From the IMG/VR virus record IMGVR_UViG_3300032116_000001, positions 310,001 to 374,000 of that record: a stretch of DNA of 64,000 nucleotides. One strand, written 5' to 3'. Under the pieces are notes generated by a model. The model worked only from the letters and a program-made list of their open reading frames with translations. It had not been told where the DNA came from and made no database searches. Shown here piece after piece: positions 18,080-40,057 of the stretch. Both the position numbers and the translations under genes were made by a program. The first letter of the stretch is position 1, and the number at the start of each line of letters is the position of its first letter.

Positions 18080-19186
18080 TTAAACAGGAGTTAATTCATC
18101 CCATAATTTCCAATAAGGTCCAAATGGGATATATGGCTTAAAATCAAACATAAACTGGCGAAGTTCTCTCCAAAGCATCCAGAATTCATTGGCTTTTTCC
18201 GCAGACCATTTATTTTCGTAATCTAAGATATCATTAAGGGCCTGATTATATTCCTTGTTGAGTGGGTGCTTTGTGTCAAAAATATATTTATTTCCGTGTG
18301 CTTCGGCCTTCGCCTGCCACATTTGATTGAAATCATTACTTCTTGTCATTTGCATGATTGCTGATTCGCGTAAATCTTCCATCGCTGCATCTATTTCTGA
18401 TATTTTTTGTGCAAATGGCTCCACAGATGAACTTCCGCCAAGATAATCATCTCGTATCACTTTGAAAGTAGGTATGATTCTTTGCAAAAAGTAGCGTTGC
18501 ATTTCTTCAGCGGCAAATGCAATACCCTGAGAATGATCCAGCTGGTGACCGTGAAATTCTCTGAAATTTTCTCTCTTCTCATGAGGATTGATAACGGGGT
18601 CTTCTTGGGGAGGCGGTGGGTCCCAGGTTTTGACTTTGATTGCATGAATTCCATAAGGAGTCAGGTCTAATTCTTCCCCATTGGCAAAGGCTTTGCCCAT
18701 CGCCTCTAAGGCCTGATCTAATCTAACGTCTCTGTTAAGTTCATTCAAATCGTAATCATCTTGCTCCGAAGAAGATGCTTTCCGTTTACCAAAATTATTG
18801 TTTAAAACACTTAGGTCAACAATTTCCATAGTTGAGCCATCGGGGTCAGTTGTAATAATACCATCATAGCCATCTGCGATCAGAGCATTTGAAAGCTCTA
18901 AGCCAGTTTTATTATATCGGTCACGAAGTACTTGCTTCCAATTGTCTTTATCACTATACCCGCCTTGGCCCCAAGGAATGATTAAGGGATTGGTAAATTC
19001 AATTTCTCCGTGCTCCCAGCCCTCAACAGGAGAAGTGCCTTCCTCGATCTTTGTTACATATTTCCCATGTGGCTCAATATCTTGGCCATATGTATCTTTA
19101 AAATCAGGTGCGCTAATAGGATTCCGCTGGTACCTAATTTTGTAAGTATCTTTCTTTTGCTCTGACTGTGCCTTTTTATACCACAT
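18080..19186 (-). CDS. MWY-tagged protein, ART-like domain
   Basis: N-term MWYKKAQ; NPLII...GYDGII pattern seen in polyvalent-protein ADP-ribosyltransferase-like domains. Confidence 0.55.
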   Translation of the reverse strand: MWYKKAQSEQKKDTYKIRYQRNPISAPDFKDTYGQDIEPHGKYVTKIEEGTSPVEGWEHGEIEFTNPLIIPWGQGGYSDKDNWKQVLRDRYNKTGLELSNALIADGYDGIITTDPDGSTMEIVDLSVLNNNFGKRKASSSEQDDYDLNELNRDVRLDQALEAMGKAFANGEELDLTPYGIHAIKVKTWDPPPPQEDPVINPHEKRENFREFHGHQLDHSQGIAFAAEEMQRYFLQRIIPTFKVIRDDYLGGSSSVEPFAQKISEIDAAMEDLRESAIMQMTRSNDFNQMWQAKAEAHGNKYIFDTKHPLNKEYNQALNDILDYENKWSAEKANEFWMLWRELRQFMFDFKPYIPFGPYWKLWDELTPV

Positions 19187-19189
19187 GTG

Positions 19190-21757
19190 TTATCCTCCTT
19201 CGTATTTGTAATATGGATTTGCAGGTCTCCGACGAACACTGACTTCTTCAGAAGAATCTGGCCCTATGCTTTCTCTAAGCACCTTGCCAGTTTCTATGTC
19301 ATCAATAGAAACTGGCCCAATGTATTTTCGGGGATTGTGAGACTCAATGTAAAACTGCATTCTCTCAGCATCATCACCATAGGCATCATACAATCCTCTT
19401 GCTATTTCTTGAAGTGATGCTTTGTTCAGGTTATATGTTTCGACATGCTTGCCCTGCACCCGATGCCAACCAAAATTTTTAAGGGCGTATGTTCTGGGAT
19501 CGCGAAAACCATCCCAGTCTTTATCCATTTGTTCACGCGCTTCTTTGGGGTCTAATTTAGGGTTTTGTTTGAGTTTTTTCCAAAGCAAGTATTCATACAG
19601 GTCTGCATCTTCATGGGCGTTTTCAATCGCATCTCCATTTCCATTGTGAATACTTGTTAAATGCTGATTATAATCATCTAAGTCCCTAATATTATTTCTG
19701 AAAATATCATACGCATGCTCCCTTGTTATTGGCCACTCAGAATGATTTTCTATGTCAAAGCCAAGTCTATTGAGCATTTCCTCTTCGGCCAACATTTCAT
19801 GATTAATATCGCCAACATCACCGTCTGCATAAACAGCCTCGCCGTCTTTTAGCCACCATTCGTTAGCTGTGCGTTGCATTGACGTCACTCTTGTCATCAA
19901 CTGATCTGCCATGCGATACATACCCTTCTTATCACATGCGCTTGATAAAATCAACATTGATTGAATCTGATTGTAAAGGCTCCTCGGGATTTTATTTGCT
20001 TGGCGCAATTGTTTTCTTTTCGAATATTTCCATGTGCCATCGAATTTTTGATCAAACTTTGGATCATTCATATCCTGATCGCTTAAATCGTCAACGTGCG
20101 TAAATAATTTGGGGTAATCAGCAGAATTGATTTTCTTTATTTCAAGCAGTATTGGCAGTTGTTGGTATCCAGTTAATTCTTCAAACAAAGACATATATTC
20201 GTCATCTATAGACTCGCCCAACTGTGATTGGATTTCCATATCCAAGCCGTATGGAAGTGTACTGGTGATATATTGTTGATGTTCGGGGTTTGAATAAAGC
20301 TCAGCGGTGTTAATTCGATATTCTTTTTTATATTCATCAATACTTTTAATCGAATTATCATAAAGTGTTTTTACATTTGAAGTGTTCATCCACCAATATA
20401 TCCCACGTTCTTTATTGCTCTTGCTTTCCCAATCAGCAAAGTTTAATGCAAAGGGTTTGTGAATTTCATCTGGGTTTGCTATCATAGCAGACATATTTGC
20501 AATGTCAGATTTCATAGCAACTTCGATCATGGTTTTTGCAACGACATCCATGTTATTTGTGTACTTTATGTTTGTTGGCACTTGCTTTCGGGTTGTGGGG
20601 TCCCATTGCACATCAGTCAAGGCCTCGGAAACATTTTCGTATATTGTCTCAATGTCATTGTGTCTTATGTCTTTTTCAACTTGTTTATAAGGGATTCCAT
20701 AATCATCATCTACAACATCCTCGTCGTAATGAGCCCCGTAAGCGCTATCATATATTCCTGCCACAATAGATTCAATTTCCTTGCTACTACCCCAATCAAT
20801 TTCTTCTTCAAAGGGGCTTTGGCTCGACCATTCTGCGTCACCTAGATCACCGAACCACTCAGAAATTCGCTCCCGATCTTTTGAATCAGGGGTTTTATTA
20901 CCAAATCCCTTAATCTGTAGGATTGTATTGGTTTTTCCGTCCATTTCTATTGTTACGTGCGGCTTGTTGTCTGGGCTTCTGAGTGAAAATATTCTAATAT
21001 CTCCTCTTTCTACTTGATAACAATAAGAACCAACGCAGTGAGACATTTGATTGCCCTCTACAGCTAGGTCATTCTTATTTGTCACCATGGTCATAAACCA
21101 TCCGTCTTCCCATTGATACACTACACGCTCGTCAATAATTTCTCCATTTTCGTCTCTTTTTAATGGCGTGTAAATTTTACCTTCACCTTTACCAGCTATC
21201 ATCTGATGCCAATCGTTTGATTTCTCAAGTGCTTGAGAGAGGTTATAGCTCGTGATGTCTAGCCGTGGTGTTTCAATTTTTTGATTACGATACCAGTCGT
21301 ATATTTCCCCAAAAAGATTGTTGAAATTTTCATACACACCTTGACTATTCAAATTAGTAAACAATCTGTAAACGTATCCGCCATTTTCATCGGGCTCTAA
21401 TCTTAACTTTCTTAATTGAGTTAAGGCCCATTTTTGAAACAAATCATCGTATCTAGCCACGAGTTGTAATTCCATCGGAGTCCACGATGTTGCTTTGGAC
21501 TGGGGTACAAAAACAGATTGTTCAAGTGTATTCCAATCGAGGCTTGGGTCTTGGTTCAATCTGTTGACATAAATGGGCAGCTTGTCTTGTGGTAAATGCT
21601 TTAAATTTTCAATCACATCTGCTTTTGTTCCGCGAGCTTGCAAGTTGTCAATTAATTCTTGCAGACCAGCCACAATAACACGACCAAGCCTCATAGGCTT
21701 TGCGTCAGATGTTTTGTTTGCGCCAAGGACGCGAGAAAATTTAAAACTATGCTTCAT
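19190..21757 (-). CDS. PcfJ-like domain multi-module protein
   Basis: DLAVEGNQMSHCVGSYC...IFSLRSPDNKPHVTIEM...ILQIKG. Confidence 0.75.
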   Translation of the reverse strand: MKHSFKFSRVLGANKTSDAKPMRLGRVIVAGLQELIDNLQARGTKADVIENLKHLPQDKLPIYVNRLNQDPSLDWNTLEQSVFVPQSKATSWTPMELQLVARYDDLFQKWALTQLRKLRLEPDENGGYVYRLFTNLNSQGVYENFNNLFGEIYDWYRNQKIETPRLDITSYNLSQALEKSNDWHQMIAGKGEGKIYTPLKRDENGEIIDERVVYQWEDGWFMTMVTNKNDLAVEGNQMSHCVGSYCYQVERGDIRIFSLRSPDNKPHVTIEMDGKTNTILQIKGFGNKTPDSKDRERISEWFGDLGDAEWSSQSPFEEEIDWGSSKEIESIVAGIYDSAYGAHYDEDVVDDDYGIPYKQVEKDIRHNDIETIYENVSEALTDVQWDPTTRKQVPTNIKYTNNMDVVAKTMIEVAMKSDIANMSAMIANPDEIHKPFALNFADWESKSNKERGIYWWMNTSNVKTLYDNSIKSIDEYKKEYRINTAELYSNPEHQQYITSTLPYGLDMEIQSQLGESIDDEYMSLFEELTGYQQLPILLEIKKINSADYPKLFTHVDDLSDQDMNDPKFDQKFDGTWKYSKRKQLRQANKIPRSLYNQIQSMLILSSACDKKGMYRMADQLMTRVTSMQRTANEWWLKDGEAVYADGDVGDINHEMLAEEEMLNRLGFDIENHSEWPITREHAYDIFRNNIRDLDDYNQHLTSIHNGNGDAIENAHEDADLYEYLLWKKLKQNPKLDPKEAREQMDKDWDGFRDPRTYALKNFGWHRVQGKHVETYNLNKASLQEIARGLYDAYGDDAERMQFYIESHNPRKYIGPVSIDDIETGKVLRESIGPDSSEEVSVRRRPANPYYKYEGG

Positions 21758-22731
21758 GAGATATTCGATTTGCCCCCAGCTTTATCTGTGTATGTTGTGG
21801 TTTTTGGCTTCTTTCCATCGCCAGGCTCACGTTCCTTTCGCGATTTTTGCTTCATGCGCTCTTTGCGCTCCTTGTCAGACAGGCTTTTGGCTTTATTAGC
21901 GGGTGTGCAAACGGGCTTTTTGCCTTTGCTACTATCACTTCTGCCGCATTCTTCGTAGCCACCATCTTTTTTTGGTCGCCGTACATCCACCCACTTTTCG
22001 TTCTTAAACCAATCGTCTAAACCACCGTGGTTTTTGGCATATTTGTTGGTTATTAAATCTATAGCATCCGCAAGGTGGTGTTTGCCATAGCAATCGGCTG
22101 CCTGCGCAGTTTTTGCTAATTCATCTGACACGAAAGTGACATCATCGTTGTCGTCGTCATCGCCGTACCATTCCGTGCGTCGTTTTGCAGCCTTGTCAAA
22201 AGCGCCAAGACAATCACTTAAATATTCAGCTAATATAAAATCAGGCGTATCACTGTTGTTTTCTAGAGAAAATGAATTAATTAGGCTTTCAAGTTCTTTT
22301 CGGAAGGATTTATGATCGTTAGCTTCTTTAATGTCGTCGTCTGATTCCTGATCCCACTCTGATTGTGGTACTAAATTGATAATTTGAAATCCGACATCTG
22401 GCAATTCAAATGCAATGTGATTAGCGTCAATAGCTGCAGGAGCGTTCATTGCTTCATCAGGCATAGAATCAATAAATTCACCGATAGTGATCCATTCTTT
22501 TGAATCCCAATTTCCTTTCGGGTCTACGCGATAAAGATTTGAGTCATAATTGTTTAAAGCGTCTTCCAAGGTCATTTCGGACTCTATGACATCTTTGTGT
22601 TCCAAAAGTGATTTATTTTCTTTGGCAACACGAATAAACACATCATGAAGAGATGATGCTTCATGATGTAAACCAAGCCCTTCAATCAAAGACGCAGTTT
22701 GATGAATTTTTGCAAGCAAATTTTGATTCAT
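21754..22731 (-). CDS. modular phage hypothetical protein
   Basis: C-terminal WFKNEKWVDVRRPKKDGGYEECGRS...KPVCTP module recognised from phages; two copies of the helical tag. Confidence 0.7.
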   Translation of the reverse strand: MNQNLLAKIHQTASLIEGLGLHHEASSLHDVFIRVAKENKSLLEHKDVIESEMTLEDALNNYDSNLYRVDPKGNWDSKEWITIGEFIDSMPDEAMNAPAAIDANHIAFELPDVGFQIINLVPQSEWDQESDDDIKEANDHKSFRKELESLINSFSLENNSDTPDFILAEYLSDCLGAFDKAAKRRTEWYGDDDDNDDVTFVSDELAKTAQAADCYGKHHLADAIDLITNKYAKNHGGLDDWFKNEKWVDVRRPKKDGGYEECGRSDSSKGKKPVCTPANKAKSLSDKERKERMKQKSRKEREPGDGKKPKTTTYTDKAGGKSNIS

Positions 22732-22732
22732 T

Positions 22733-23299
22733 TTATTTACCCGTCATGTCCCCGACTGTTTTGCCTGCTTCCCACATTCGGCAAGACCAATATCTTGCCT
22801 TTGTCTTTGGGCCAGGATTATCACAATTATGTCGGGCGCGGAAGTTCTTTCGGCGCTCAGGATTGTCTCTTTTAATATCAGTCGTTGGATCGCCGAAATT
22901 AACTTTTTTAACCTTATCACCATCTTTGACATAGACAGAGAATTTTTTAGGCCCATCTGGGGTGCGAAAAGGCTTGTTTAGTGGTTTGTTGGACTTTGCC
23001 TGAGCTTCTCTTTGTGGAGATTTTTCCAATTTGATAATTTTATCAAAATAACCAATGTCAATAAGCCGAGGGTCATCAATGTATTTTTCCACCGCATCAT
23101 TAAACTCGGCTCTTGCTTCATAGTGTAGTGTTTCCACGTTTTCTTCAAAATCAAGCTCTTCTAACTCTTTTGAAGATGACCTTTGATTAGTTGTGTTGAC
23201 ATTTGCTATCCGACTCAAAACATCAGTAAGGATATCAGCTTCTTCGTGCAGGCCTAGTTTGTCCAATTCGTGTGCCACTTGAGCAATCTTTTTCAGCAT
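22733..23299 (-). CDS. modular phage hypothetical protein
   Basis: LNKPFRTPDGPKKFSVYVKD...FRARHNCD...ARYWSC module known from T4-like phages; start at MLKKIAQ. Confidence 0.75.
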   Translation of the reverse strand: MLKKIAQVAHELDKLGLHEEADILTDVLSRIANVNTTNQRSSSKELEELDFEENVETLHYEARAEFNDAVEKYIDDPRLIDIGYFDKIIKLEKSPQREAQAKSNKPLNKPFRTPDGPKKFSVYVKDGDKVKKVNFGDPTTDIKRDNPERRKNFRARHNCDNPGPKTKARYWSCRMWEAGKTVGDMTGK

Positions 23300-23300
23300 A

Positions 23301-23867
23301 TTAGTCCTCTTTTTTCCACTTACCGCCCTTAGCCTTGTATCGCTTACTTGCAGCCCCGAGTGCATAAGCTGATGGCCAGACGTCGTATTTGTCCTTGGCC
23401 CAATTTTTGCAGCTTTCCCAAAGCTCAGGATTAGTGGGGATATTTTCTTTTTCTTTAGTCTTGGCAACTCGAATAAAAACTTCATGCATTTGTGATGCTT
23501 CAGCTGTCATACCCCGATCCTCAAGCTCTTCAGTGATTTGAGAAATCTTTGTAAGGACGCTGGCCACAGCACTAGTTGTAATGTTTTCTTCATCTTCTTC
23601 GTCGTCGCTCTGCAGGTTGTCTTCAAGTTCAAAATAACGTCTTAAAATTAACAATTCTTTTCTTAACTGATCTATTTCTTCGGGATCGTAGATTCCGCGA
23701 TCAAGCCCCTGTAAACACTGATCGACTTCCATCATTCCTTCCCAGGGATAATGTGCCACACCTGTTGACGCAAAAGAGTACAATGCAGAACCTTGACCGC
23801 CATGCCAATCACTTGCAATGCGGCGAAGTTCCCCGATGCTATATCCACTAATATCAATTTCACCCAT
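23301..23867 (-). CDS. modular phage hypothetical protein
   Basis: WHGGQGSALYSFASTG module, helical tag, PTNPELW...VWPSAYA...YKAKGGKW module. Confidence 0.7.
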   Translation of the reverse strand: MGEIDISGYSIGELRRIASDWHGGQGSALYSFASTGVAHYPWEGMMEVDQCLQGLDRGIYDPEEIDQLRKELLILRRYFELEDNLQSDDEEDEENITTSAVASVLTKISQITEELEDRGMTAEASQMHEVFIRVAKTKEKENIPTNPELWESCKNWAKDKYDVWPSAYALGAASKRYKAKGGKWKKED

Positions 23868-24075
23868 GATAATTCTTTTTTACACTCTTTGAATCTCTTT
23901 CCCTGTTTTGTCGATGCTCATTGTAGGTTCAATTTCATTTAAAAAAAACTTTTTTTGAAAAAAGACAAAAAAGCTGCAACATTTTCTTTGGCCAATCGTT
24001 ATAAGTAGTGTAAGACGAATTGAAAAGAGCCAAAACGATCTGAAAAGCAAATTGAAAATTTTATAGAGGTTTGAG

Positions 24076-25032: not shown

Positions 25033-25310
25033 AGTCTACAAATTGAAACTCCCACATTAAATTTTAATGACTAACATTTTGTTAGTTGAATCCTAAATGA
25101 GTCCCAATCCAACAGGGGTTCTTGGTCAGATTTAAGTTCTGCTGGGAGACTCATACGATGTAATCCTCGGAACCGATGCTCTGGGACATTGAATGAAAGT
25201 TCAATAGTCATATGATCGCCGAGGCGAGAAGAAAAGAAGTTTTGGCTTTCTTCTTTAAAAAAGCCAATTAGATTTGCGCTCGAATCAACCAAGGACGCTT
25301 GGGAATATCG

Positions 25311-26432
25311 TCAACTACCACACGCACAAGGCGTGTGGCTTGCTACAAGCTCAGCCTTCGGCTGAGCGAACAATAGGGAGGTTGACTGCTCCCCTAAAGA
25401 ACCTATATTCTTACTGGCATTAAAGTCTGCATTCTCCGTGTGTCCGCAGGACATGCAGAGAAACACAGTTTGACTTTTTCTATTGGCTTTTTCACAATAT
25501 CCGCACTCACTACACGTCGCAGACGTGTAGTGAGCAGGAACAATAGCTAAAGGAACTCCATAGAGTTCAGCTTTGTAAGTAATGTAGCTTCTGAGTTGGG
25601 CGAATGCCCAACTCATTCTTTGACTTCTATTCACTCGCCTGACCGTTACTCTTTTGTTGATATGCGTTAGCTCTTCGAGAGCCAACGCATATCCGAGTGC
25701 CTTTGCTTTTGTTACTAAAAGTTTTGAAATGACGTGATTTGTGTCTTTTCTAAATCTGGATTCTTTTTGTCCACATTTCTTGATTCTTCTTTTTGCAGAG
25801 CGTGTTCCACGCTTCTGCAATCTTTGTCGATGAGAGTGATATTGTTTTCTTTTCTTCTCGATGTGTTCTCCCGAGAACACATCTCCTAAAGAACTTACAG
25901 CGATTTGTTTCACTCCTAAGTCTATTCCTATAACGTCTTTGGCGTTATAGGCTGATTCTGTTGGAATTTCTAAAGTACAAAGAAGATAGAACTTGCCATT
26001 TTGATAAACTAAATCAACTTGCCCCTTTCTATATTTGAAGCGTTCTTTGTCGTATATTTGGATTGGGATATTGATTCTTCCATCATTAGTCCAGATATTA
26101 ACTAAATCAGTTCCTTTAAAAGTGATTACTCTGTCGTCGTAGACGACAGCAGAAGTCTTTTTGAAGTAATTTGGATTTTTGCTTCTTTTCTTTTTATATG
26201 TAGCGGTAACCACATCAATAGCCCTTATTATTAATTGAGAAGAGAAGCTTGGATGCGTTTCACGCATCCCATGATATGCATTTCTTTGCAATTGAACTTT
26301 ATTATAAGTTTCTGTTGAATGAGCTATTGTTGAAAGCTCATTACAAACATCATTGAAAGTATTCATAGTGCGCAGAAGCGCACTATGATGAATCTCATTT
26401 GTATTGAGTTTCACTTTCAGAGTGATATTCAC
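25311..26432 (-). CDS. tnpB: IS200/IS605-family TnpB with Zn finger
   Basis: GIDLGVKQIA, LALEEL, YTSATCSECG...CMSCGHTENADFNASKNI; 3' hairpin CTCAGCC-GAA-GGCTGAG and GTAGTTGAC end. Confidence 0.92.
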   Translation of the reverse strand: MNITLKVKLNTNEIHHSALLRTMNTFNDVCNELSTIAHSTETYNKVQLQRNAYHGMRETHPSFSSQLIIRAIDVVTATYKKKRSKNPNYFKKTSAVVYDDRVITFKGTDLVNIWTNDGRINIPIQIYDKERFKYRKGQVDLVYQNGKFYLLCTLEIPTESAYNAKDVIGIDLGVKQIAVSSLGDVFSGEHIEKKRKQYHSHRQRLQKRGTRSAKRRIKKCGQKESRFRKDTNHVISKLLVTKAKALGYALALEELTHINKRVTVRRVNRSQRMSWAFAQLRSYITYKAELYGVPLAIVPAHYTSATCSECGYCEKANRKSQTVFLCMSCGHTENADFNASKNIGSLGEQSTSLLFAQPKAELVASHTPCACGS

Positions 26433-26586
26433 ATTATGTGTTTATGTGTAATGCGTTCTAACACCTTCGTGATTTTCAATTATTTTTACATATTATCGTA
26501 AATTCGATTCCTCCTATAAAATTGTCGTCTTGGCGCAGACGTTAAACGCGCCTTTTCTGTTTTAAAAATTGTACAAGGAAAGTGTA

Positions 26587-27372
26587 ATGAGATTAAAAAC
26601 GAAACAAGAAATTTCAAAGATGTTTATCACTGGGGCCATTTTAGCCGATGCCCTTAAAATCATGAAAGAGTCAGTGGTGCCAGGTATCACAACCTTGGAA
26701 ATTGATTCTATAGGAGAATCGTATGTTAAGAGTTGTGGTGCAGTGGCCGCATTAAAGGGATTTAAGCCCCGATTTTCCGATCATGTTTACCAGCATGCAA
26801 CTTGTATTTCAGTTAATAATCAAATTATTCACGCCCCGCCCTCCGACTATACGATAAAAAAGGGGGATATTGTAACCTTGGACATGGCTATATCTAAAGC
26901 TTATTGGTATGCCGATGCGGCTATCACTATCGTAGTAGAAGACAATGACAGTGATGAATACAAAGAGTCAAAAATACTATCTGAATATACACACTTGGCA
27001 CTTTTGTCAACGATTGAAAAAATTATGTCAGGAGACATAAAAAAAACAAGCGACATTGGAAAGCATATTCAGAAAATGGCCGATAAAAAAAACTTCGGCG
27101 TGGTATCTGCGGCTTGCGGTCACTCGATAGGTCAAGAATTACATGAGCTAGGAATACAGATTCTTAATTCTTATGAAGAAGGAGATTCGGGGGTAAATAT
27201 TGTGCCAGGAATGACATTCTGTATAGAACCTATTTTTACAATGGGATCGGGTGATATTACGAAAGACAAGCTTGATCCTTGGACGATATATACTTCTGAT
27301 GGCTCTCATTCGGCTCACTGGGAACACACCGTGGCAATTACAGAAAATGGCCCCTTAATATTGACATTATGA
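26587..27372 (+). CDS. map: type I methionine aminopeptidase
   Basis: CISVN...IHAPP, LD...YADAAIT, GHSIG...HE, IEP, SAHWEHT. Confidence 0.92.
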   Translation: MRLKTKQEISKMFITGAILADALKIMKESVVPGITTLEIDSIGESYVKSCGAVAALKGFKPRFSDHVYQHATCISVNNQIIHAPPSDYTIKKGDIVTLDMAISKAYWYADAAITIVVEDNDSDEYKESKILSEYTHLALLSTIEKIMSGDIKKTSDIGKHIQKMADKKNFGVVSAACGHSIGQELHELGIQILNSYEEGDSGVNIVPGMTFCIEPIFTMGSGDITKDKLDPWTIYTSDGSHSAHWEHTVAITENGPLILTL

Positions 27373-31088: not shown

Positions 31089-31456
31089 AGTCCAAATACT
31101 CTATTGGTGATAGAGTAAAGACAAGATACGATGCCCAGGTGACAAAGGAAATTATGATTCCTGCGGGGACCATGGGCAAAGTAATTAGGGTTGATAATGT
31201 CGATCACAAATGGGGCAAAGTGTATCCCTGCACTAGACGGGGATACACCGCCTCTTGGGTTGAATTTGATAGCATTCCAATGTATTTTCTTATGTATAAT
31301 AGTCAGTTGGAGTGGCTTTCGAGTTCCCCGACTGACGACAGCTACACCACAGAAGTTATCGATGGCCATACTGTATTAAAGTTTCCTGACGGGACAGAAC
31401 TTTGGCACAAAGGCGAAACTCTTTATAACGGACTTGAAGCATTACCCCCCAATTGA
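31085..31456 (+). CDS. hypothetical protein
   Basis: ATGA overlap with the upstream gene. Confidence 0.6.
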   Translation: MKSKYSIGDRVKTRYDAQVTKEIMIPAGTMGKVIRVDNVDHKWGKVYPCTRRGYTASWVEFDSIPMYFLMYNSQLEWLSSSPTDDSYTTEVIDGHTVLKFPDGTELWHKGETLYNGLEALPPN

Positions 31457-31474
31457 ATTTAAATTGAAGTAAAA

Positions 31475-31795
31475 ATGGCACACGGCAGAGAAGCGTATAT
31501 TGAGCGGTTAAGGTCTGGCGAAAACGTCAGCTTTAGAGAAAGCGGAAATTCTATGACCCCGAAAATCAAACATAGACAAAAATGCACGTATTCACCTGTG
31601 CTTAGTCACGATGACATTCAAGTCGGGGATGCAGTGTTTTGCAAAGTTGGCTCATACTATTACACGCATTTAATTAAGGCCAAAAAGCAAGAAGGCGATG
31701 ATTATATTTATCAGATTGGCAACAATCATGGAAAAATTAATGGCTGGACCACTTTAAACAAGATTTACGGTAAGGTTATCAAAGTTCAAGACTGA
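31475..31795 (+). CDS. S24/S26 peptidase-like protein
   Basis: ESGNSMTPKI...VGDAVFCKV...YTHLI. Confidence 0.6.
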   Translation: MAHGREAYIERLRSGENVSFRESGNSMTPKIKHRQKCTYSPVLSHDDIQVGDAVFCKVGSYYYTHLIKAKKQEGDDYIYQIGNNHGKINGWTTLNKIYGKVIKVQD

Positions 31796-31831
31796 AAGGG
31801 CTGTTTTGCCACCACGCCGAATTCATTTAAT

Positions 31832-32719
31832 GTGTGGTATAGGTCAGCATCTGAGTCATTGAACAAATCGCGTTACAATCGCGATTTGTCTTCGATTATG
31901 CAAGACACTTTTTTCCACGGCACGGCTGAAAACTTTGAAGGTCCGCTTAAAGGCGGCGCATATGATAACATTATATGGACAGCAAATAATCCAGCTGTAG
32001 CACAAAATTACATTCCAGCTTCAGGAGCGCAATCGGGTTTTTCTCTTGACAAATGGGCTGAGGATCACGAGCCATATTCTCACTTTCGATATCATCGGGG
32101 CACGGACGTTGCACTTTTGAAACAAATGGGATATGGCTATCCTACTGATGAAGAATTATATCCGAATGGTGAGCTTAAAAACTATCGTATAAAAGATCGC
32201 CATGCAACACATGGAGAGATGCGGGAATATTTAAGATCGCTGGGATACGACCCAGAAGAAGATTTTTGGATTAACACAGAATATGTTGATGGTGACGAGA
32301 TTGTCCGCCCCAAGAATTACAAAATGCCAGGCAGGCTTTTTATTGGGCATCCTCAAAAGCCTTTGAATATTTTTGATACTACTGAGTATTTAGAAGGCGA
32401 TGAATCTAACCCAGCTTATCACATGCATGATGTTTTTAATCTTATTAAAGGCAAGGGATATCACGGCGTTAAAATACCAGATTTTGCTCAGTCAAAAAAC
32501 TGGGGAAATGTGCATCACGAAAGTGTTGGAATTTTCCCCGAATATGTTGATCATTTAAACTGGGATGTTATACCAGCGGTAAATTTTGACTGGGGAGATA
32601 ATCTTTTAGGTGTTTATTCGACGCCTGACTGGGATATTCATCATAAGCAACAGATACTTTCTGCTCATCAAAGTGGCGAAAAAGTTGATCCTCGATTATT
32701 AGACTGGGCTCAAAATTAA
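31832..32719 (+). CDS. MWY-tagged protein, ADP-ribosyltransferase-like
   Basis: GTG start MWYRSAS; FFHGT...IWTANNPAVAQNY...GYHGVKI. Confidence 0.55.
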   Translation: MWYRSASESLNKSRYNRDLSSIMQDTFFHGTAENFEGPLKGGAYDNIIWTANNPAVAQNYIPASGAQSGFSLDKWAEDHEPYSHFRYHRGTDVALLKQMGYGYPTDEELYPNGELKNYRIKDRHATHGEMREYLRSLGYDPEEDFWINTEYVDGDEIVRPKNYKMPGRLFIGHPQKPLNIFDTTEYLEGDESNPAYHMHDVFNLIKGKGYHGVKIPDFAQSKNWGNVHHESVGIFPEYVDHLNWDVIPAVNFDWGDNLLGVYSTPDWDIHHKQQILSAHQSGEKVDPRLLDWAQN

Positions 32720-33519
32720 ACGATTGACTGTCTTTCTGTTTTCTTTTCCCTTGTTGATTTTAACATTCTCCAGTTCTCTTTAATAAATTGAACAGCTTCT
32801 GAATATGTTTTTCCAGCTACTAATTCTCTTCCTGTATAATCCTCAACCATCCAGTTACCATAAACTTCTTTTTTCATCGGGAAAATCATTCCCTTGTTTA
32901 CGCTTGGCCCCCAAACAATAACTTGGGATTGCTGATCACCATGATGATCGAAAAGAATTCCTCCGCTATAAAACACAACTGCTTCGTTTCCATACTGCCC
33001 TGTAAAAGCAGTGTGCTCAGCGTCATTTGAATCCACTTGAAATGCAAAATTATAACCTGGGTCTTCCATGCGGTCTTCCTTCCAGGTTGATAGATGAACT
33101 CCCTCAATGTCAGGATGACCATATTTAAATCCTTCATTTTCGATATCTCTTGCATTTTCCGTGAAATGCACAAGCCAGTCGGGCCTGAGCGCTCTCTGAT
33201 ATTCTAATGAATTATATGCAGGACTTTCGTATGCATTTGAATTATCATATTGGTATCTTTCGCGAGAGTCATTTAAAAAACTAACAAATGCTTTGCGATA
33301 ATCATCAGGCGCATTGTTCAACCATGTATAGCCTCGTTCATCTGGGTAATCTTCCACGTCCTCCATGATGCTTGGGTCTAATCGGTATTCTTCGTGAGAA
33401 TCCAAAAAATTATCCACAAGAAAGGCATAATCATAAGGATTGGTTCCCTCTCGTACATAATCTCTCAAATAAGCAAGCTCTGTGCTATATCCCGCTTTTT
33501 TGATGCTTCTGTACCACAT
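32716..33519 (-). CDS. MWY-tagged hypothetical protein
   Basis: MWYRSIKKAG; WLVHFT...GYNFAF. Confidence 0.65.
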   Translation of the reverse strand: MWYRSIKKAGYSTELAYLRDYVREGTNPYDYAFLVDNFLDSHEEYRLDPSIMEDVEDYPDERGYTWLNNAPDDYRKAFVSFLNDSRERYQYDNSNAYESPAYNSLEYQRALRPDWLVHFTENARDIENEGFKYGHPDIEGVHLSTWKEDRMEDPGYNFAFQVDSNDAEHTAFTGQYGNEAVVFYSGGILFDHHGDQQSQVIVWGPSVNKGMIFPMKKEVYGNWMVEDYTGRELVAGKTYSEAVQFIKENWRMLKSTREKKTERQSIV

Positions 33520-33628
33520 AATGTTTTTTTCTAAGAATGTTTATTTTTAGCCTATAATTATCTAGGCTGATTCAATTTTTTAATTGAATTTAACATGTTA
33601 TAAGCTGTTATATCAGCTTGGGTTAATT

Positions 33629-34519
33629 ATGTGGTACAAACTTGCTCAGTTGGCATCTGTTGACGCTCCAGTTCTTGGAAACCAATCTGGCCCCGCTCAT
33701 TTAGGAAGCGGCCAGGAAATGCTTATTGAAGCAGGCGGAGATAGTGTTCAAGAAGTTGTTAGTAATTTTATGAATAGCAGCCAGCCTGTATTCTTTAGAG
33801 ATTCAAATGGCCAGCAATATCTGATTATTCATGGCTCGCCCGCACAAGACGGAGCTATGTATTTTGATGGTGGGGCAGCGGGGTCAATTAGGCATGATGA
33901 ATTAGGCGATTGGATGCGCACTCAAGGATATGATCCAGGTGCCACGAAAGTGATAGCATGTCATGGTGGCCAAATTATGACGCTAAACTCACCTGGCATT
34001 ACCCCTGCCTTCGATTACACTGGTCAACTTGAGATTGCCGCGCCAAATGATGGCAGCGGAGATTTCCTTTCAATTAGAGGAGCCTCTGCAAGATACGCGC
34101 TTTCCAAGGAGGGACGAGGCAAAGTTGACATAGATGGTATCAAGGTTTGGATAGAATATCCCAAAGGCTCAACTCGATCAGGCAAGGGCAAGGACGGCAA
34201 AGAATGGAGCCGAAAGATGGAGTGTGATTATGGCCGAATCATGGGAACAGTAGGGGCTGATGGCGATGCTATTGATATGTTCCTTGGGGGAAATCTTGAC
34301 GCCGATAAAGTTTTTATCGTAGATCAACTGAATTCTGATGGCGACTTTGATGAGCATAAATGTGTTATGGGGTGCGACACCTTAAAGCAAGCAAAAGAAT
34401 TATATCTCTCCAATTATCCAAAAGACTGGAAATGCGGGAAAGTTACAGAAATGAACATTTCTGAATTTAAGAAGTGGCTTAAAAAAGGAGACAAAAAAGT
34501 CCCAGCATCATCGGAGTAA
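33629..34519 (+). CDS. MWY-tagged protein with C-terminal inorganic-pyrophosphatase-like domain
   Basis: MWYKLAQ; IEYPKGSTRSG...DYGRI.GTVGADGDAIDMFLG...DEHK. Confidence 0.75.
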   Translation: MWYKLAQLASVDAPVLGNQSGPAHLGSGQEMLIEAGGDSVQEVVSNFMNSSQPVFFRDSNGQQYLIIHGSPAQDGAMYFDGGAAGSIRHDELGDWMRTQGYDPGATKVIACHGGQIMTLNSPGITPAFDYTGQLEIAAPNDGSGDFLSIRGASARYALSKEGRGKVDIDGIKVWIEYPKGSTRSGKGKDGKEWSRKMECDYGRIMGTVGADGDAIDMFLGGNLDADKVFIVDQLNSDGDFDEHKCVMGCDTLKQAKELYLSNYPKDWKCGKVTEMNISEFKKWLKKGDKKVPASSE

Positions 34520-34521
34520 TT

Positions 34522-36084
34522 ATGTGGTACAAGCAGGCTCAAAACACCGTTGAAGAAAATAAAAAGTCCAAGTCTTTTTATTCTCATATGCTTCGCGTCG
34601 TTGAAGAAAAAATGGGCTCAAAAATGCCTGCTCAAGACCTTAAAAGACTGCTTCAAAAATCTGGCGTCAGTGCCGAAGAAATGAGTTGGGTACACCTTGA
34701 CGAGTATTTGGAAAACAACCCTATTGTTTTTAAATCAGATTTGATAAATAGAATACAGTCAAAGCTGCACAATATTGTAGTTCACGAAATGGATTATGAA
34801 CAAGAACATGAAGACAATCGTGATACCACATGGGGAACGCAATTTGATGATGAAGATTACTTCAAGGGCTATGAAGACTATACTCTGCCCTACGGGGATG
34901 ATTATAAGGAGTTTTTAATTACAATCGGCGCGAAACCAGAAGATGAGTTTATTGATTATTTGATGAAGATAAATACTGGTTACGAGCGAATGGGTCGCGA
35001 AGCACTAAAGAAAAGCATTGAAGAGCATCCTGGTTCGTGGCGCAATCATTGGGGACATTGGAAGCGTTCTTTGGGGGAGGACTTCCCCGATTATGAATCT
35101 AGGCACTTCGAGGGTCATAAAAACCCCATAGCTCACATGAGAACGACTTCAAGAACGTCTAAGGACGGAAAGAAGTCTTTACATATTGAGGAAATACAAA
35201 GCGACTGGCACCAGGATGGGCGCAAACATGGATATGATCGGCCAGGACGTGCCAAAGATATAATCACAGTGTCGAAGCTGTGGGAGAAGGTTGCTGTTTT
35301 TAAATCGGCCACGGAAGAAGAAAAGAAAGAATATGAAGCTGCAAAAACAAGGTTAGAAAGAGATCAGTGGCGACCCGACACTGTCCCCCCTGGCCCATAT
35401 GCGAAAAACTGGCACGAATTGGCGATGAAGCATGCTATTGATATGGCAGTACGCGGCGGTTATGATCGCGTAACATGGAACACGGGTGATATTAGCCGAA
35501 ACATATTTGGGCTATCTAATGTTTTAGATAAATTAGAATTAACAAAAGATCAAAACGGAAGAATTTATATTCGTGGCTGGATGTCAGATAAAATAAAAGT
35601 TAACCAACAAGCTGTCGAGTCAAAAGAGCTTGCAAATTATATAGGCAAAGACCTGGCAGAGAAATTTTTATCATCGGGGCAAGAATCAATGGTTATTCAG
35701 GGTAAAGACTTGGAATATGGCGGCTACGGATTGCAAGCATTTTATGATCACATTCTGCCAAGCTTTACTAAAAAATACATTAAAAAATGGAACGGGGACG
35801 TTGGCGAGCATGAGGTGAATCAGGGTCAATACATGCACTACATTCAGGAAAGGCCAGCGCCTGATGGTTCGTGGATTGTCCGTCAATTTAGTCCATCAGG
35901 ATTAAATGAATCAACTGAATCTTTTCCGTCTTTAGAAGAGGCGAAAAAGTTTAAGGAAGAGAACAGAGTCAAATCTTGGGCGAAAGTTCACGGATTTGAT
36001 ATTACCCCCGAAATGCGAGAAGATATACAGAATAATGGACAGAGACTTGCCACATCCATTGTGGCCAGAAGAGTGAAAGGATAA
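34522..36084 (+). CDS. MWY-tagged protein with EEIQSDWHQ domain
   Basis: MWYKQAQ; AHMR...LHIEEIQSDWHQDGRK...PYAKNWHELAMK, recalled from large polyvalent/virion proteins. Confidence 0.65.
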   Translation: MWYKQAQNTVEENKKSKSFYSHMLRVVEEKMGSKMPAQDLKRLLQKSGVSAEEMSWVHLDEYLENNPIVFKSDLINRIQSKLHNIVVHEMDYEQEHEDNRDTTWGTQFDDEDYFKGYEDYTLPYGDDYKEFLITIGAKPEDEFIDYLMKINTGYERMGREALKKSIEEHPGSWRNHWGHWKRSLGEDFPDYESRHFEGHKNPIAHMRTTSRTSKDGKKSLHIEEIQSDWHQDGRKHGYDRPGRAKDIITVSKLWEKVAVFKSATEEEKKEYEAAKTRLERDQWRPDTVPPGPYAKNWHELAMKHAIDMAVRGGYDRVTWNTGDISRNIFGLSNVLDKLELTKDQNGRIYIRGWMSDKIKVNQQAVESKELANYIGKDLAEKFLSSGQESMVIQGKDLEYGGYGLQAFYDHILPSFTKKYIKKWNGDVGEHEVNQGQYMHYIQERPAPDGSWIVRQFSPSGLNESTESFPSLEEAKKFKEENRVKSWAKVHGFDITPEMREDIQNNGQRLATSIVARRVKG

Positions 36085-36114
36085 TTGTAATTTTAAACAG
36101 AAAAAGAGACTATC

Positions 36115-36861
36115 ATGAATCGTATCGCTGTCATAAAGTCATTAATTGCGATTGCTAACTCCTTGGAAGATCAGGAATTATCCTCTGAGGCCTCGCGATT
36201 AGATGCAGTAATTAGAAAAATCGCCAGCATTGATGATGAAGGGGGCCTTCAAGGTGATTTTAATATATCCCCTTCCATTATTAATTCTTTAGGCGGCGAT
36301 AGTGCAATGAATGAGCAAAATTCATCTGCCATGCAGCAAGCCGAGCGAATGATTAACGAGGCTGCAGGAGTCCCGTCTATGCGAGAGTTAGCTGTACGAT
36401 GGAGTGTTTCGCCAGGGTCAGCCCTTTGGATTTATGCTCAAACTGGCGAAGTAAATGATCTTGTACATCGCAAGGCGCTTTTAAAGGAAATTTCAGAAGC
36501 CATTGATAAAAATCATGACCCTCAAGAGGCTATTTTGCTCAATCAATTTTATAGCTTGATTTTGAAAACACTGCCAGTTGCAATAGGTCAAAACAAAGTT
36601 AATGTAAAGTCGGTAAATCATAGTCGCAAACCAAGTGATATTGGGGGAGAAGATATATTCTTAACTTTCACCACTGAAGATGATCATGTTGGCGGCATAC
36701 AAATGCATAAATCAGACAAGGGTCAAATTCAATTTGTTGGATCGGGTTATTTTAAAGATGGCAAATTTATGTCATGGGGATATAATGCACAAGACAGCAG
36801 CCTGCTTGCCAACGCACTTAACTCTTTTCTTATGGAGCAAGAAAGACAATCATATAGGTAA
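36115..36861 (+). CDS. hypothetical protein, tandem paralog A
   Basis: N-terminal ~50 aa similar to the next gene. Confidence 0.7.
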   Translation: MNRIAVIKSLIAIANSLEDQELSSEASRLDAVIRKIASIDDEGGLQGDFNISPSIINSLGGDSAMNEQNSSAMQQAERMINEAAGVPSMRELAVRWSVSPGSALWIYAQTGEVNDLVHRKALLKEISEAIDKNHDPQEAILLNQFYSLILKTLPVAIGQNKVNVKSVNHSRKPSDIGGEDIFLTFTTEDDHVGGIQMHKSDKGQIQFVGSGYFKDGKFMSWGYNAQDSSLLANALNSFLMEQERQSYR

Positions 36862-36871
36862 AAAAACAAAC

Positions 36872-37663
36872 ATGGATCGCATAGCTACAATCAAATCTTT
36901 AATTAAAATCACAAACGCACTGGAAAAAGGTGGGTTTTATAAAGAGGCCCAAACTCTTGACTATGTGATTCGTCGTATTGCCAGTATTGAGAACGAAGGA
37001 GGGCTTAATGGAGAATATGATATTTCTCGGGCCATTCTTAATGACATAGAAAACCCTAAGCTTTCCGACGATTTACCAAATTTTGATACTGCAGAAAACA
37101 TGATCGAAGAATTGCCAGATAGATTCTTGCAGGACAACATATTTGACGAAGAGGATGAAGAAATTGACCCAGAAGAAAAAGAATTAAGACTTCTGGCAAG
37201 TCGATGGAGCACAGGAAAGGAATCCGCTTTACACGGGTTTGCTGTTTCTGGCATGATCGTAGATTTAGATGATCATGCTAGGGCTCTTGAAGAGATTGAT
37301 CGAGCGCTGGATTTAAACACTGATCCAGAAGAATATATCAGATTAAGAGACCTTGAGGCACATTTAATAATGTCTATTCCTCTCATAATCCCATTTATTG
37401 GCTATGATAGCATCAAAGACATCAAAATACAACCTCGGAGCACGGAAAAAGGTCTTGACGTGATGTTTTTCTTTAGAACTGATCGAGGTTTTCGTGGTGT
37501 GCTTAATTGCAGCGTTGACCATCAAGAAAATATTATCCCGCGTTTTACGGGGCTTGAAGATAACGGTGAATACAAATCAATGCATTATTCCAACGATCAA
37601 ATTAAACAATTGGCTGAAGCTTTTTTTAGAAGATTACACATTGAAACAGGGGGAGATATATAA
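36872..37663 (+). CDS. hypothetical protein, tandem paralog B
   Basis: start reassigned to MDRIATIKSL. Confidence 0.7.
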   Translation: MDRIATIKSLIKITNALEKGGFYKEAQTLDYVIRRIASIENEGGLNGEYDISRAILNDIENPKLSDDLPNFDTAENMIEELPDRFLQDNIFDEEDEEIDPEEKELRLLASRWSTGKESALHGFAVSGMIVDLDDHARALEEIDRALDLNTDPEEYIRLRDLEAHLIMSIPLIIPFIGYDSIKDIKIQPRSTEKGLDVMFFFRTDRGFRGVLNCSVDHQENIIPRFTGLEDNGEYKSMHYSNDQIKQLAEAFFRRLHIETGGDI

Positions 37664-37665
37664 TC

Positions 37666-38031
37666 ATGCAGCTTATTAGCAAAATGCTCACCATGCAATC
37701 TCAACTTCGCATTTTTCATTGGCAATCAAAGACTTTTGCACAGCATGAAGCCTTTGGCAAGGCCTATGAGTCACTTGATGAATTGGTGGATGATTTCATA
37801 GAAGTATTTCAAGGGACTAGAGGTGTTGTAAAAACAAAAGGTAAATTCAATTTGCAACTTTGTAATCTTACCGATTGTGATCCCGTAGAATTGATTAATG
37901 AGCACATTGAATTTTTATCCAATGATTTGACAAATTTATTAAATGACAAAAAAGACACCGATTTGTTAAATTTAAAAGACGAAATGATCGCAGTTTTAAA
38001 CAAAACCAAGTATTTACTCAGATTAACCTAA
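37666..38031 (+). CDS. small ferritin/Dps-like four-helix protein (DUF5856-like)
   Basis: QLRIFHWQSKTFAQHEAFGKAYESLDELVDDFIEVFQG. Confidence 0.7.
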   Translation: MQLISKMLTMQSQLRIFHWQSKTFAQHEAFGKAYESLDELVDDFIEVFQGTRGVVKTKGKFNLQLCNLTDCDPVELINEHIEFLSNDLTNLLNDKKDTDLLNLKDEMIAVLNKTKYLLRLT

Positions 38032-38032
38032 G

Positions 38033-40057
38033 ATGAAATCATTAGCTATTTCGCGTGTGCAAACGATGCTAAGAAGTGCATCGAGTTTAGATAAAATTGG
38101 CAAGTATGCAAGTGCTGATATTTTATCTAATGCTGCGCATCATATGTTAAAAAAGATTTCTCAAACAAACATGTCAACAAGAATTCCTGCTGATTCATAC
38201 ATGGAAAAATATATGGATCAATACAAGGATTATTTTGGAGAGCCAACTATTGATAAAGATGGTTCTCCAAAATATTATACGGATCAATATGATGATATAG
38301 ACCATTCTTATGTCTTTGCGCTGAAAAATAACCCAACCGCGATAGATAATCTTAGACCAAGTGAATTAAAATACTGGCATAAAAGACAGACGCAGATGCA
38401 TGATTACGAGCCAGATCATCAAACGTGGGATCATTTAAAGCATTCTTTTGAAAGAGGAACTCCCGAATATGATCATTATCTTAGGCTTTTGTCTCGCGAT
38501 CCTGTTTACGAAAATATCAATCCCGATGATTTGATTAATTATGTGAAATCACAGCAAGATCAATATAGCCGTGGAGACTGGAGCAATCCAACGGACTGGA
38601 ATGTTGCTCATTCTCTTCTTCGAGCTGCTAATCACTATTTAATACATGATAATTTTGATTATAAAAATTATGTTTCTGACATCGAAAGTCCTTACAATCT
38701 TACAAGCCCCTTAAATCAGCAGCAAGTTGATGATCGCCGAGCCCTTAATTTAGTAATGGAACGAGATAAACCCATGGTCAAACTGCCTCCTACAGAGGCA
38801 TACAGACTGGGCGACGGATCATTGATCCATTTTAACATGGGTCGCAGAGACACTATATTAAGACATTTTACAAAAGATGATGTCGATAAGCCTTACGACG
38901 AACTAATTGCGCGAAGCCTGTTAAGCAATGATAAAGACATAGCAAGCGAAAAGCTCAACAGCATTAAAGAAAAAATGAAAAATATTTATCGGATGACCCC
39001 CGAAAACACAGAAAATTATTATCATTATCTGAAAGTTTTCGCTATGTATCCTAATTTAATCGGAACATCATTAAAAAACATTGATGAAATCGTATCTAAT
39101 CTAAATGAAGGGCAAGACGGGTCAAATGACATGGGAAGACTCATGGTTGTCTTTAATAAAAATTGGCGACAATGGGTGGCTAAATTTAATAATGATGTTC
39201 ACGAAGCTGCGCAAATCTTGCCAATGGGCAGTACACAGGACTTGCGCGGACTAGGCGATTTGCTAATGCAGTGGTATGGCAAGGTCAAAACTACAGATTT
39301 GTACACAATAGCCTCATATTGGCCAAATCTTACCGCAGAAGATAAATCACTTCCTATTGATCAACTAGCTGATCGAGTTCGATATTACAAAGTCAGGCAG
39401 CTTTTTAAAGCAGAAAGCATTAATCATCCTTCTTTTGCAATCGAGGCAGCCAAATGGTGGCAATCTGCCGAGGGCGACGAGGATGATGCATGGCTTAACA
39501 TTGATGAAGATGATGACACAGAGCCGTTCGATTATGAAAACATTGAAAAATTGTTTATCGACTCTCAAAATGTACCCCTCCCTGTTTGGGCTTCATACAC
39601 AGCAAGTATTGGTGGGTTGACTGGAAGATTTTTGCCTCGTTCAGACGTCCGCGGGTTGTTCCTGGGTCAATACAGCAATTCCTGTCAACATCCCTGGGGA
39701 GTTGGAGCAAGTTGCGCAATTCACGGCCAAACCTCGCCGCATGGAGCATTTTTTGTTGTTGAAGACCAGAAAGGCAACATCATCGCCCAAAGTTGGGTGT
39801 GGGAAGATTATGACGGAGATGTTGTTTTTGATAATGTCGAGGCGCTTGGCATTGGCGACAGAAGAATGCCAATAGTTCAGTCAATTTATAAAACTGTAGC
39901 GGAACAAATGGAAGGCCGTATAGTTCACATAGGAACGGGCGGAAGCGACTTGGATTTGGAACCATTTAAAGACACAGACTTTCGACTCGCGCCAAATGAT
40001 TATTATGGGTATCGAGACTCCACAAGACAAAAAATACTCGCAGACAACACTTATTAA
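38033..40057 (+). CDS. large protein with C-terminal PcfJ/GNAT-like domain
   Basis: LFLGQYSNSCQH...FFVVEDQKGNIIAQSWVW...FDNVE. Confidence 0.6.
   Translation: MKSLAISRVQTMLRSASSLDKIGKYASADILSNAAHHMLKKISQTNMSTRIPADSYMEKYMDQYKDYFGEPTIDKDGSPKYYTDQYDDIDHSYVFALKNNPTAIDNLRPSELKYWHKRQTQMHDYEPDHQTWDHLKHSFERGTPEYDHYLRLLSRDPVYENINPDDLINYVKSQQDQYSRGDWSNPTDWNVAHSLLRAANHYLIHDNFDYKNYVSDIESPYNLTSPLNQQQVDDRRALNLVMERDKPMVKLPPTEAYRLGDGSLIHFNMGRRDTILRHFTKDDVDKPYDELIARSLLSNDKDIASEKLNSIKEKMKNIYRMTPENTENYYHYLKVFAMYPNLIGTSLKNIDEIVSNLNEGQDGSNDMGRLMVVFNKNWRQWVAKFNNDVHEAAQILPMGSTQDLRGLGDLLMQWYGKVKTTDLYTIASYWPNLTAEDKSLPIDQLADRVRYYKVRQLFKAESINHPSFAIEAAKWWQSAEGDEDDAWLNIDEDDDTEPFDYENIEKLFIDSQNVPLPVWASYTASIGGLTGRFLPRSDVRGLFLGQYSNSCQHPWGVGASCAIHGQTSPHGAFFVVEDQKGNIIAQSWVWEDYDGDVVFDNVEALGIGDRRMPIVQSIYKTVAEQMEGRIVHIGTGGSDLDLEPFKDTDFRLAPNDYYGYRDSTRQKILADNTY

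Follow-up and report, generated by a model that had tools for sequence, protein, structure and literature searches.

A short N-terminal tag on unrelated enzymes of huge freshwater phages, with a possible role in virion loading

We analyzed a 64,000-nucleotide stretch of DNA, the window, which comprises bases 310001–374000 of the virus record IMGVR_UViG_3300032116_000001. The record is the genome of an uncultured freshwater phage (378,848 bp, GC 40.6%, 100% complete according to CheckV). A preliminary description of the window had read the span at 18080–40057 as domains of giant polyvalent proteins that are unpacked into separate genes and share a delivery tag. A common tag is indeed present: 12 open reading frames (ORFs) of the 379-kb genome start (M/V)WY, in most cases followed by [KR]-hydrophobic-A-[QK]. 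We refer to this seven-residue peptide as tag 1. A longer helical motif, tag 2, is shared by other proteins of the span. Our tentative reading, which we hold at slightly under an even chance, is that the tags are a virion-loading address for unrelated enzymes, which would be ejected with the DNA to act in the new host. Coordinates below are those of the window unless they are given as genome coordinates.

Tags on unrelated proteins of huge phages

With a crude gene set of 347 ORFs, 0.19 starts of the form xWY are expected. An automatic rule found 8 such starts and curation found 12 (P ∼4e-11), in agreement with the common tag that had been proposed. The tagged ORFs are unevenly distributed, with 7 of the 12 lying within 12.5% of the genome (P = 2e-4). 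Of the genes of the span, six have the start (M/V)WY[KR], and the HExxH protein at the end of the window is the seventh. GTG is the start codon in four of the tag-1 ORFs (five if a doubtful ORF at genome 129977 is included), and several of the starts come directly after ...TAATT with no Shine-Dalgarno sequence. The public calls for some homologues, as well as the public call for the gene at 31832–32719 of this genome, start downstream and therefore miss the tag.

Over 46 families the consensus of tag 1 reads M-W-Y-[KR]-(L/I/F)-A-[QK]. Its arginine is encoded by CGA, AGA, CGG, CGC and AGG, and its tyrosine by TAT and TAC. Relatives of the gene at 32716–33519 begin MWWR, MNWYKK or MTWYKK, so that the peptide is kept and the bases are shifted. 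Taken with the homologues of 31832–32719, the starts that are kept are MWYR, MWWR, MNWYKK or MTWYKK. Within families the tag is retained at 30–40% identity. Because the codons vary synonymously and insertions keep the peptide and not the bases, we conclude that tag 1 is selected at the protein level.

In the AlphaFold2 (AF2) models the tag residues are of low confidence, with a predicted local distance difference test (pLDDT) score <50 for residues 1–23 and 1–4. For the EEIQSDWHQ domain described below, all three of the stand-alone full-length homologues begin MWYR or MWYK, and embedded copies align only from about residue 10–17. A correlation of the tag with domain class across genomes, which had been suggested as a check, thus holds: the stand-alone homologues are tagged and the embedded EEIQSDWHQ copies are not. 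Judged from the models and alignments, tag 1 is an add-on outside the folded domain. We also aligned representatives of 34 more families from other contigs, having left two of 36 clusters out of the alignment. They have unrelated folds, and only M1, W2 and Y3 are invariant among them. The tagged proteins have no similarity past residue 7, and about 25 of the 34 families sampled are without a Pfam match.

In IMG/VR, 68 places match a degenerate DNA pattern for MWYKxAQ/H, and 50 of them open an ORF of at least 80 amino acids (aa), nearly all at the first start codon that follows a stop or close to it. The same pattern has 120 matches in cellular genomes, of which only 5 are ORF starts. When the matches were read in 30 fetched loci, 26 of 31 distinct ones opened ORFs of at least 86 aa. 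Five other phage contigs of 300–479 kb hold 6–13 pattern matches each, against 0–3 in the reversed control, and these often form tight clusters. Shorter contigs with the tag are pieces of huge phages, ∼10% complete. As the carriers are 300–479 kb in size and the short ones are fragments, we assign the system to a clade of huge phages.

Tag 1 is found in other contigs on ART-PolyVal, GNAT, AAA_33/zeta-like kinase, NUDIX+HAD_SAK_2, GT41, M23 peptidase and CCA-adding enzyme proteins. In the genome studied here, a 722-aa CCA-adding/poly(A)-polymerase + HD enzyme starts MWYRFAQ (genome 183320–185488), and a second huge phage also has an MWY-tagged PolyA_pol (CCA-adding) protein. The tag therefore reaches tRNA/RNA-repair enzymes. 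Its presence on CCA-adding/HD, NUDIX-HAD, kinase, GNAT, GT41 and M23 proteins means that it is not limited to domains of the polyvalent type. The polyvalent-type solo genes of this genome that lack MWY are an untagged ArdC-like MPTase-PolyVal (genome 49727–50680(−), the genome's only PF18818 match), an 855-aa PcfJ-like gene and an ART-PolyVal gene with the degenerate start MPFFRRISQ (genome 142959–144179(+)). The latter is the genome's only PF18760 match and has a tag-2-like helix close to its C-terminus.

Tag 2 is a ∼35-residue helical motif, IA..LD..G...EAd.lT.v..RiAq, which five proteins of the span share. A hidden Markov model built from these five matched 11 ORFs of the genome, with further matches in related contigs. 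The tag is usually N-terminal, and the C-terminal parts of several carriers are very basic. On the minus strand, a 325-aa protein (21754–22731) has an N-terminal tag 2 and a very basic C-terminus. The gene at 22733–23299(−) also has it at the N-terminus, with a likely start MLKKIAQ at 23299 (the longest ORF extends to 23485) and a weak DUF5754 match (E = 0.01). A 188-aa protein (23301–23867(−)) with a weak C-terminal DUF5872 match has it in mid-protein, at about residues 101–140. On the plus strand, a 248-aa protein with an N-terminal tag 2 (36115–36861) is paralogous to 36872–37663 and to the N-terminal domain of 23301–23867. The gene at 36872–37663(+) carries an N-terminal tag 2 with a likely start MDRIATIK at 36872, and its longest ORF runs from 36680. 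Judged by its sequence, tag 2 looks helix-turn-helix-like or like a small helical docking module. Both tags end [KR]-hydrophobic-A-Q (residues 4–7 of tag 1), an element too short for statistics. No family that swaps tag 1 for tag 2 was found in the sequences gathered.

Domains of the tagged genes and their relatives

The 296-aa protein at 33629–34519(+) starts MWYKLAQ (tag 1) and matches InPase PF18823 with 152 bits (E = 1.1e-44; gathering score 26.8 bits) over profile positions 11–135 of 135, which confirms the inorganic-pyrophosphatase-like domain proposed earlier. The domain occupies residues 133–255 of the 296-aa form, or 178–300 in a longer TTG ORF (33584–34516). The N-terminal domain of the protein is found elsewhere as a stand-alone tagged family of 146 aa. 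Among the PHROG matches are a minor head protein, a virion structural protein and DarB-like antirestriction, and relatives of the protein fall under features annotated as portal, minor head or internal head protein.

Directly downstream, a 520-aa protein (34522–36084(+)) starts MWYKQAQ (tag 1) and consists of a stand-alone domain with the motif EE[IVL]QSDWHQ.GRK.GY. An exhaustive HMMER search found 9,609 cluster representatives with this EEIQSDWHQ domain at E ≤ 1e-3, so the domain noted in the preliminary description is real. It has no relative in Pfam, NCBIfam or PDB, including searches with a 17-sequence profile. The domain (∼500 aa) has ∼29 invariant residues, among them H205, R207, R211, E224, Q226, S227, D228, H230 and E299. 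The family is large and uncharacterised and looks enzyme-like, and the solo form found here is handy for its study.

Most of the best 150 of the 9,609 matches are proteins of 1,000–7,000 aa in which the domain is internal. In these best 150, InPase is also found in 12 and one to five ART-PolyVal-like domains in 40. Single giants join EEIQSDWHQ with SLT + InPase + ddrB-ParB + MuF_C, or with InPase + ART-PolyVal. Among cultured phages, Dolichospermum phage Dfl-JY45 carries the domain within a protein of 2,387 aa, and Pelagibacter phage HTVC028P carries it in gp34, which is flanked by “internal protein A” and “internal virion protein”. InPase, ART and EEIQSDWHQ co-occur in giants, and for these three the claim that the domain types of the span are usually parts of giant fusion proteins is therefore correct. 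It fails for PcfJ, which is present in none of the 150 giants. The polyvalent-protein paper (PMC5512222) does not mention PcfJ.

A Pfam scan of the whole genome found PcfJ in two places only. The 855-aa protein at 19190–21757(−), which has no MWY start, matches PF14284 with 52.2 bits (E = 8e-14), and a 489-aa protein at 40054–41523(−), with a GTG start and reading (M)WYKYAK (tag 1), matches it with 54.3 bits (E = 2e-14); the gathering score is 25 bits. A third PcfJ gene had been claimed, and the likely candidate is 38033–40057(+). It encodes a protein of 674 aa, the N-terminus of which is a divergent form of tag 2 shared across its family. Pfam and PHROGs were negative for this protein, and hhalign gave a probability <1% when the protein alone and its 15-member family were compared with a PcfJ alignment. 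Hence two of the three PcfJ assignments stand and the third does not. The 855-aa protein reads M-R-L at residue 22, where its relatives read MWY, and its residues 626–855 are homologous to a separate MWY-tagged protein of 236 aa in another phage contig (E = 9e-25). It has lost the MWY start of its relatives and gained a domain at 626–855. As this C-terminal part of 230 aa is a separate MWY-tagged gene elsewhere, the earlier suggestion that single domains are mixed and matched is borne out. In other contigs the tagged ART-PolyVal gene always adjoins an MWY-tagged PcfJ gene.

Two ADP-ribosyltransferase (ART)-like genes had also been proposed. Structure prediction gives both an ART fold, but neither has a Pfam, PHROG or NCBIfam match, and ART-PolyVal PF18760 (cut-off 31.2 bits) matches neither these two nor 18080–19186 even at E ≤ 1. 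Profile searches thus bear out the InPase and two of the PcfJ assignments, but not those to ART.

The first of the two candidates, a 295-aa protein at 31832–32719(+), has a GTG start, reads (M)WYRSAS (tag 1) and contains an FHGT motif. Its AF2 model, made from a 9-sequence family, has a pLDDT of 68. The best VIA match of the model is ParT (Z 9.6), followed by RES, diphtheria toxin, MbcT, exotoxin A and PARP; cholix toxin is matched as well. Altogether 91 chains match at Z ≥ 5, almost all of them ARTs. The model also matches the ART-like domain of a pre-ejectosome chain of cyanophage A4 (Z 7.3). When the family was compared by hhalign with ART-PolyVal domains collected from giants, a match at the FHGT motif was obtained with 79% probability (E = 1.7e-5); this alignment gave local matches only, and a thinner one failed. 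The model supports, at the level of the fold only, that 31832–32719 is a divergent ART-PolyVal-like protein with an ADP-ribosyltransferase fold of the H-Y-E type. In run X14, one of the freshwater metagenomes that hold near-identical DNA, all six differences within 31832–32719 are at third codon positions, which shows this to be a gene under purifying selection. Five further differences fall in the upstream ORF 31475–31795, with a spacing in multiples of three.

This 106-aa ORF (31475–31795(+)) lies directly upstream of the tagged ART gene and has a GNSMTP motif that recalls S24/S26 serine peptidases. We rejected it as an S24 peptidase, the sole Pfam S24 match of the genome being elsewhere (genome 216420–216587).

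The second candidate is a 267-aa protein at 32716–33519(−) that starts MWYRSIK (tag 1) and has an ART-like C-terminal half. The AF2 model, made from a 19-sequence family, has a pLDDT of 84.6. All of its top 40 VIA matches are ADP-ribosyltransferases, with a best Z of 6.5; the Foldseek E value is ∼1e-2, and matches in the AlphaFold database are weak. We have moderate confidence that this predicted structure represents an ADP-ribosyltransferase-like fold. The motifs WLVHFT, GYNFAF and H..GD.E.Q are invariant. Candidate catalytic residues are kept within both families, FHGT/Y60/Q220 in one and H118/Y156/E197 in the other.

At the start of the span, a 368-aa protein (18080–19186(−)) starts MWYKKAQ (tag 1). 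Its residues 25–179 are homologous to an internal segment (958–1101) of a 2,006-aa giant. When unannotated proteins were compared by jackhmmer with the fetched giants and loci, the only new link was that from 18080–19186 to P0042. The protein is possibly ART-PolyVal-like, with a match limited to the GYDGI region.

The zincin that had been noted at 62587–63945 is the C-terminal part of a 915-aa protein encoded by an ORF at genome 372587–375334(−) (62587–65334 in window numbering, of which 62587–64000 lies in the window). The protein has a GTG start and reads (M)WYCSAK (tag 1); two other contigs encode homologues of it, with the starts MWYSR and MWNYKR. The motif HE[IV]AHAL (HExxH) at residue 597 is invariant in 3–4 homologues, so the motif is conserved, but no profile match is significant: SprT-like is the only match (E = 0.08), MPTase-PolyVal PF18818 is not matched, and sequence searches of NCBIfam and PDB were empty.

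We read the span as belonging to a variable cargo/effector region of the genome, in which InPase, the two ART-fold proteins, the EEIQSDWHQ domain and the N-terminal domain of 18080–19186 are encoded singly and have the PcfJ-like and HExxH proteins for company. Unrelated genes of the span are those for TnpB, M24 peptidase and a RING_SCO0854-like protein. Two TnpB/Cas12f-like genes (OrfB_IS605 + TNB) are found, one at 7218–8396(+) and the other in the middle of the tagged-gene region at 25311–26432(−). Inside the cluster lies an M24 methionine-aminopeptidase-like gene (26569–27372(+), E = 3e-31). The 697-aa protein at 28995–31088(+) resembles the MXAN_6230/SCO0854 RING-domain family (NCBIfam E = 5e-134, under the model cut-off) and matches phrog_33734 (E = 4.5e-95). 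Outside the span, a 1,409-aa ResIII/DEAD helicase with a C-terminal Methyltransf_8 domain is encoded at 51122–55351(−). Its layout is DarB-like, and it has weak intein-like matches (INT_rpt, PI-TkoII_IV). Further flanking genes encode a CobW/HypB/UreG GTPase (45144–46232(−)), a radical-SAM-like protein (17177–18064(+)) and an AAA_28 protein (15652–16749(+)). Most genes have no Shine-Dalgarno sequence. At least 10 freshwater metagenome studies from 2017–2025 hold near-identical DNA. In a freshwater metatranscriptome run, two short contigs are identical to 33656–33956 and 36123–36347, a weak sign of transcription that could also reflect DNA carry-over.

Possible functions of the tags

If the tags are a virion-loading address, tag 1 would be read by a phage-encoded assembly component, and the unrelated enzymes that carry it would be loaded into the procapsid. 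As the head matures, the tag may then be cleaved off behind hydrophobic-A-Q. On ejection of the DNA the enzymes would go along into the new host and be active there immediately, perhaps against its defences. With such a short portable address, domains could be gained, lost, fused or split without loss of delivery. That the tag is confined to phage DNA implies a phage-encoded reader. We regard a loading address as the best-supported reading because the tag is a short, phage-confined add-on common to unrelated enzymes, and because the cargo domains have relatives in other phages that are head proteins, internal proteins or proteins that are ejected. An M23 peptidoglycan peptidase is one of the tagged families and counts in the same direction. 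Solo versions of polyvalent-protein domains have been described before, and packaging was inferred for them (PMC5512222).

Several observations weigh against virion loading. No reader protein was identified, and a DNA similarity search with the genome found no cultured phage. The HK97-type capsid profile PF05065 has no match in the genome. No structural or protease gene is tied to the tag; the T4-type prohead protease (Peptidase_S77, PF03420) and Gp23 (PF07068) profiles are unmatched in the genome, which is uninformative since the controls were unmatched too. In another contig, the neighbours of the tagged ART gene are, according to PHROGs, an HNH endonuclease, an endolysin-like protein and unknowns, with no structural genes. 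Tag 1 is also carried by enzymes with no obvious role at entry (CCA-adding/HD, GT41, NUDIX-HAD), and the internal tag 2 of 23301–23867 misfits a simple N-terminal propeptide. Finally, the [KR]-hydrophobic-A-Q element by which the two tags are linked is too short for a statistical test.

Some of these same observations would suit a signal that acts inside the cell. The tag could direct its carriers, without encapsidation, to a phage-built site such as a replication/translation factory, a membrane or a compartment, or dock them on a common scaffold. Tag 2 has the look of a small helical module for docking and need not be N-terminal, tag 1 is carried by RNA-repair/tRNA enzymes (CCA-adding enzyme, NUDIX-HAD, kinase), and huge phages build compartments (PMC7824862). 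However, no compartment genes were seen, though none were searched for, and the tag has no hydrophobic or signal-peptide character. The homologous domains, moreover, sit in virion or internal proteins of other phages. On balance, localisation or docking strikes us as unlikely.

The tag could also be a signal for turnover or processing in the cell, read by a phage protease or unfoldase or acting as a conditional degron after N-terminal trimming, that would limit the active time of self-harmful enzymes such as ARTs and nucleotide-modifying enzymes. The timing of several of the tagged enzymes would matter, and tryptophan and tyrosine next to the N-terminus are residue classes read by the bacterial N-degron pathway. 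The M24 methionine-aminopeptidase-like gene at 26569–27372 lies within the cluster. Against such a signal, ordinary methionine aminopeptidases leave the methionine in place before a bulky residue, and the MNWYKK variants would need two residues to be removed. ClpS (PF02617) is not encoded in the genome, whereas control genomes were matched. A host-type signal is further disfavoured by the near absence of the tag from cellular ORF starts, and the virion-protein relatives of the cargo domains would be left unexplained. We therefore give turnover a low probability.

That the tag is no address at all, and instead a nucleotide-level initiation feature in a non-Shine-Dalgarno host or a remnant of the shared ancestry of the starts, would agree with the lack of a Shine-Dalgarno sequence in most tagged genes, their A/T-rich leaders and the frequent ...TAATT before the start, but is very improbable, as the synonymous Tyr/Arg codons, the exchange of K for R and the insertion of single residues preserve the peptide and not the bases (this codon evidence largely excludes a nucleotide-level artefact), and as the tag persists at 30–40% identity ahead of unrelated folds that share nothing past residue 7.

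Returning to virion loading, we think it a real possibility, though on the doubtful side of even, that throughout a clade of huge freshwater phages (300–480 kb) a portable tag of seven residues, plus a longer helical variant, loads at least a dozen unrelated enzymes per genome into the virion for co-injection. If true, the injected proteins of huge uncultured phages, many from unannotated families, could be listed from sequence alone, and the shuffling of polyvalent domains between solo and fused forms would be explained. The tag would then also be a very short handle by which the heads of large phages could be filled with foreign proteins. Should its function differ, a strictly phage-specific, clade-wide motif of seven residues on unrelated enzymes is still a testable entry to the biology of huge phages.

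Comparison with known systems

The capsid targeting sequence (CTS) of phage T4 ends I-A-E ahead of a protease cut, which resembles the hydrophobic-A-Q found here. The likeness is one of analogy only, as M-W-Y-[KR]-hydrophobic-A-[QK] is otherwise unlike the T4 CTS. As in IPI, IPII and IPIII of T4, a short N-terminal peptide is found on unrelated proteins of one phage. In T-even phages a short conserved N-terminal peptide serves as a portable address on internal proteins, which evolve fast, have anti-defence or host-modifying functions and are encoded in variable regions, features that have actual or presumed counterparts here (PMC3012670). The cargo differs, consisting mostly of large enzymes (267–915 aa) rather than the small basic proteins of T4. 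Further differences are that a dozen or more genes per genome are tagged, that there is a second, longer tag, and that packaging is inferred.

In the polyvalent proteins of phages and conjugative elements, a single polypeptide carries 2–15 effector domains (Iyer et al., 2017, PMC5512222). InPase, ART-PolyVal-like and HExxH peptidase domains, with GNAT and NUDIX neighbours, are common to both systems. Unlike polyvalent proteins, the genes described here are solo or two-domain genes (267–915 aa) with no fusion to MuF or portal, and a common N-terminal tag is not described in the cited work. Because of their solo or two-domain form, we consider them relatives of polyvalent domains and not polyvalent proteins.

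Internal virion proteins of T7-like phages and other podoviruses are a further parallel, since HTVC028P gp34 (in the gp33–36 region) holds the EEIQSDWHQ domain among internal core genes. The cyanophage A4 pre-ejectosome is another, by way of the ART-like domain that matches the 31832–32719 model. In contrast to the proteins studied here, those of HTVC028P and A4 are large core proteins that are built into the ejectosome and have no MWY tag. The P1 Dar system and MuF-fused cargo likewise load anti-restriction and enzymatic cargo into heads, and InPase relatives are annotated as DarB-like or minor head proteins. Loading in those systems takes place via MuF/portal fusion or DarA-type partners, neither of which was seen on the tagged genes here.

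We found no published description of the MWY tag in the searchable literature, including the two comparative papers closest to the subject. Neither solo polyvalent domains nor N-terminal capsid targeting sequences are new, and what appears from sequence comparison to be new is a clade-wide MWY tag that joins the two. If its role in loading is true, the tag would be a second independent solution beside the T4 targeting sequence and the fusion of domains in giant proteins.

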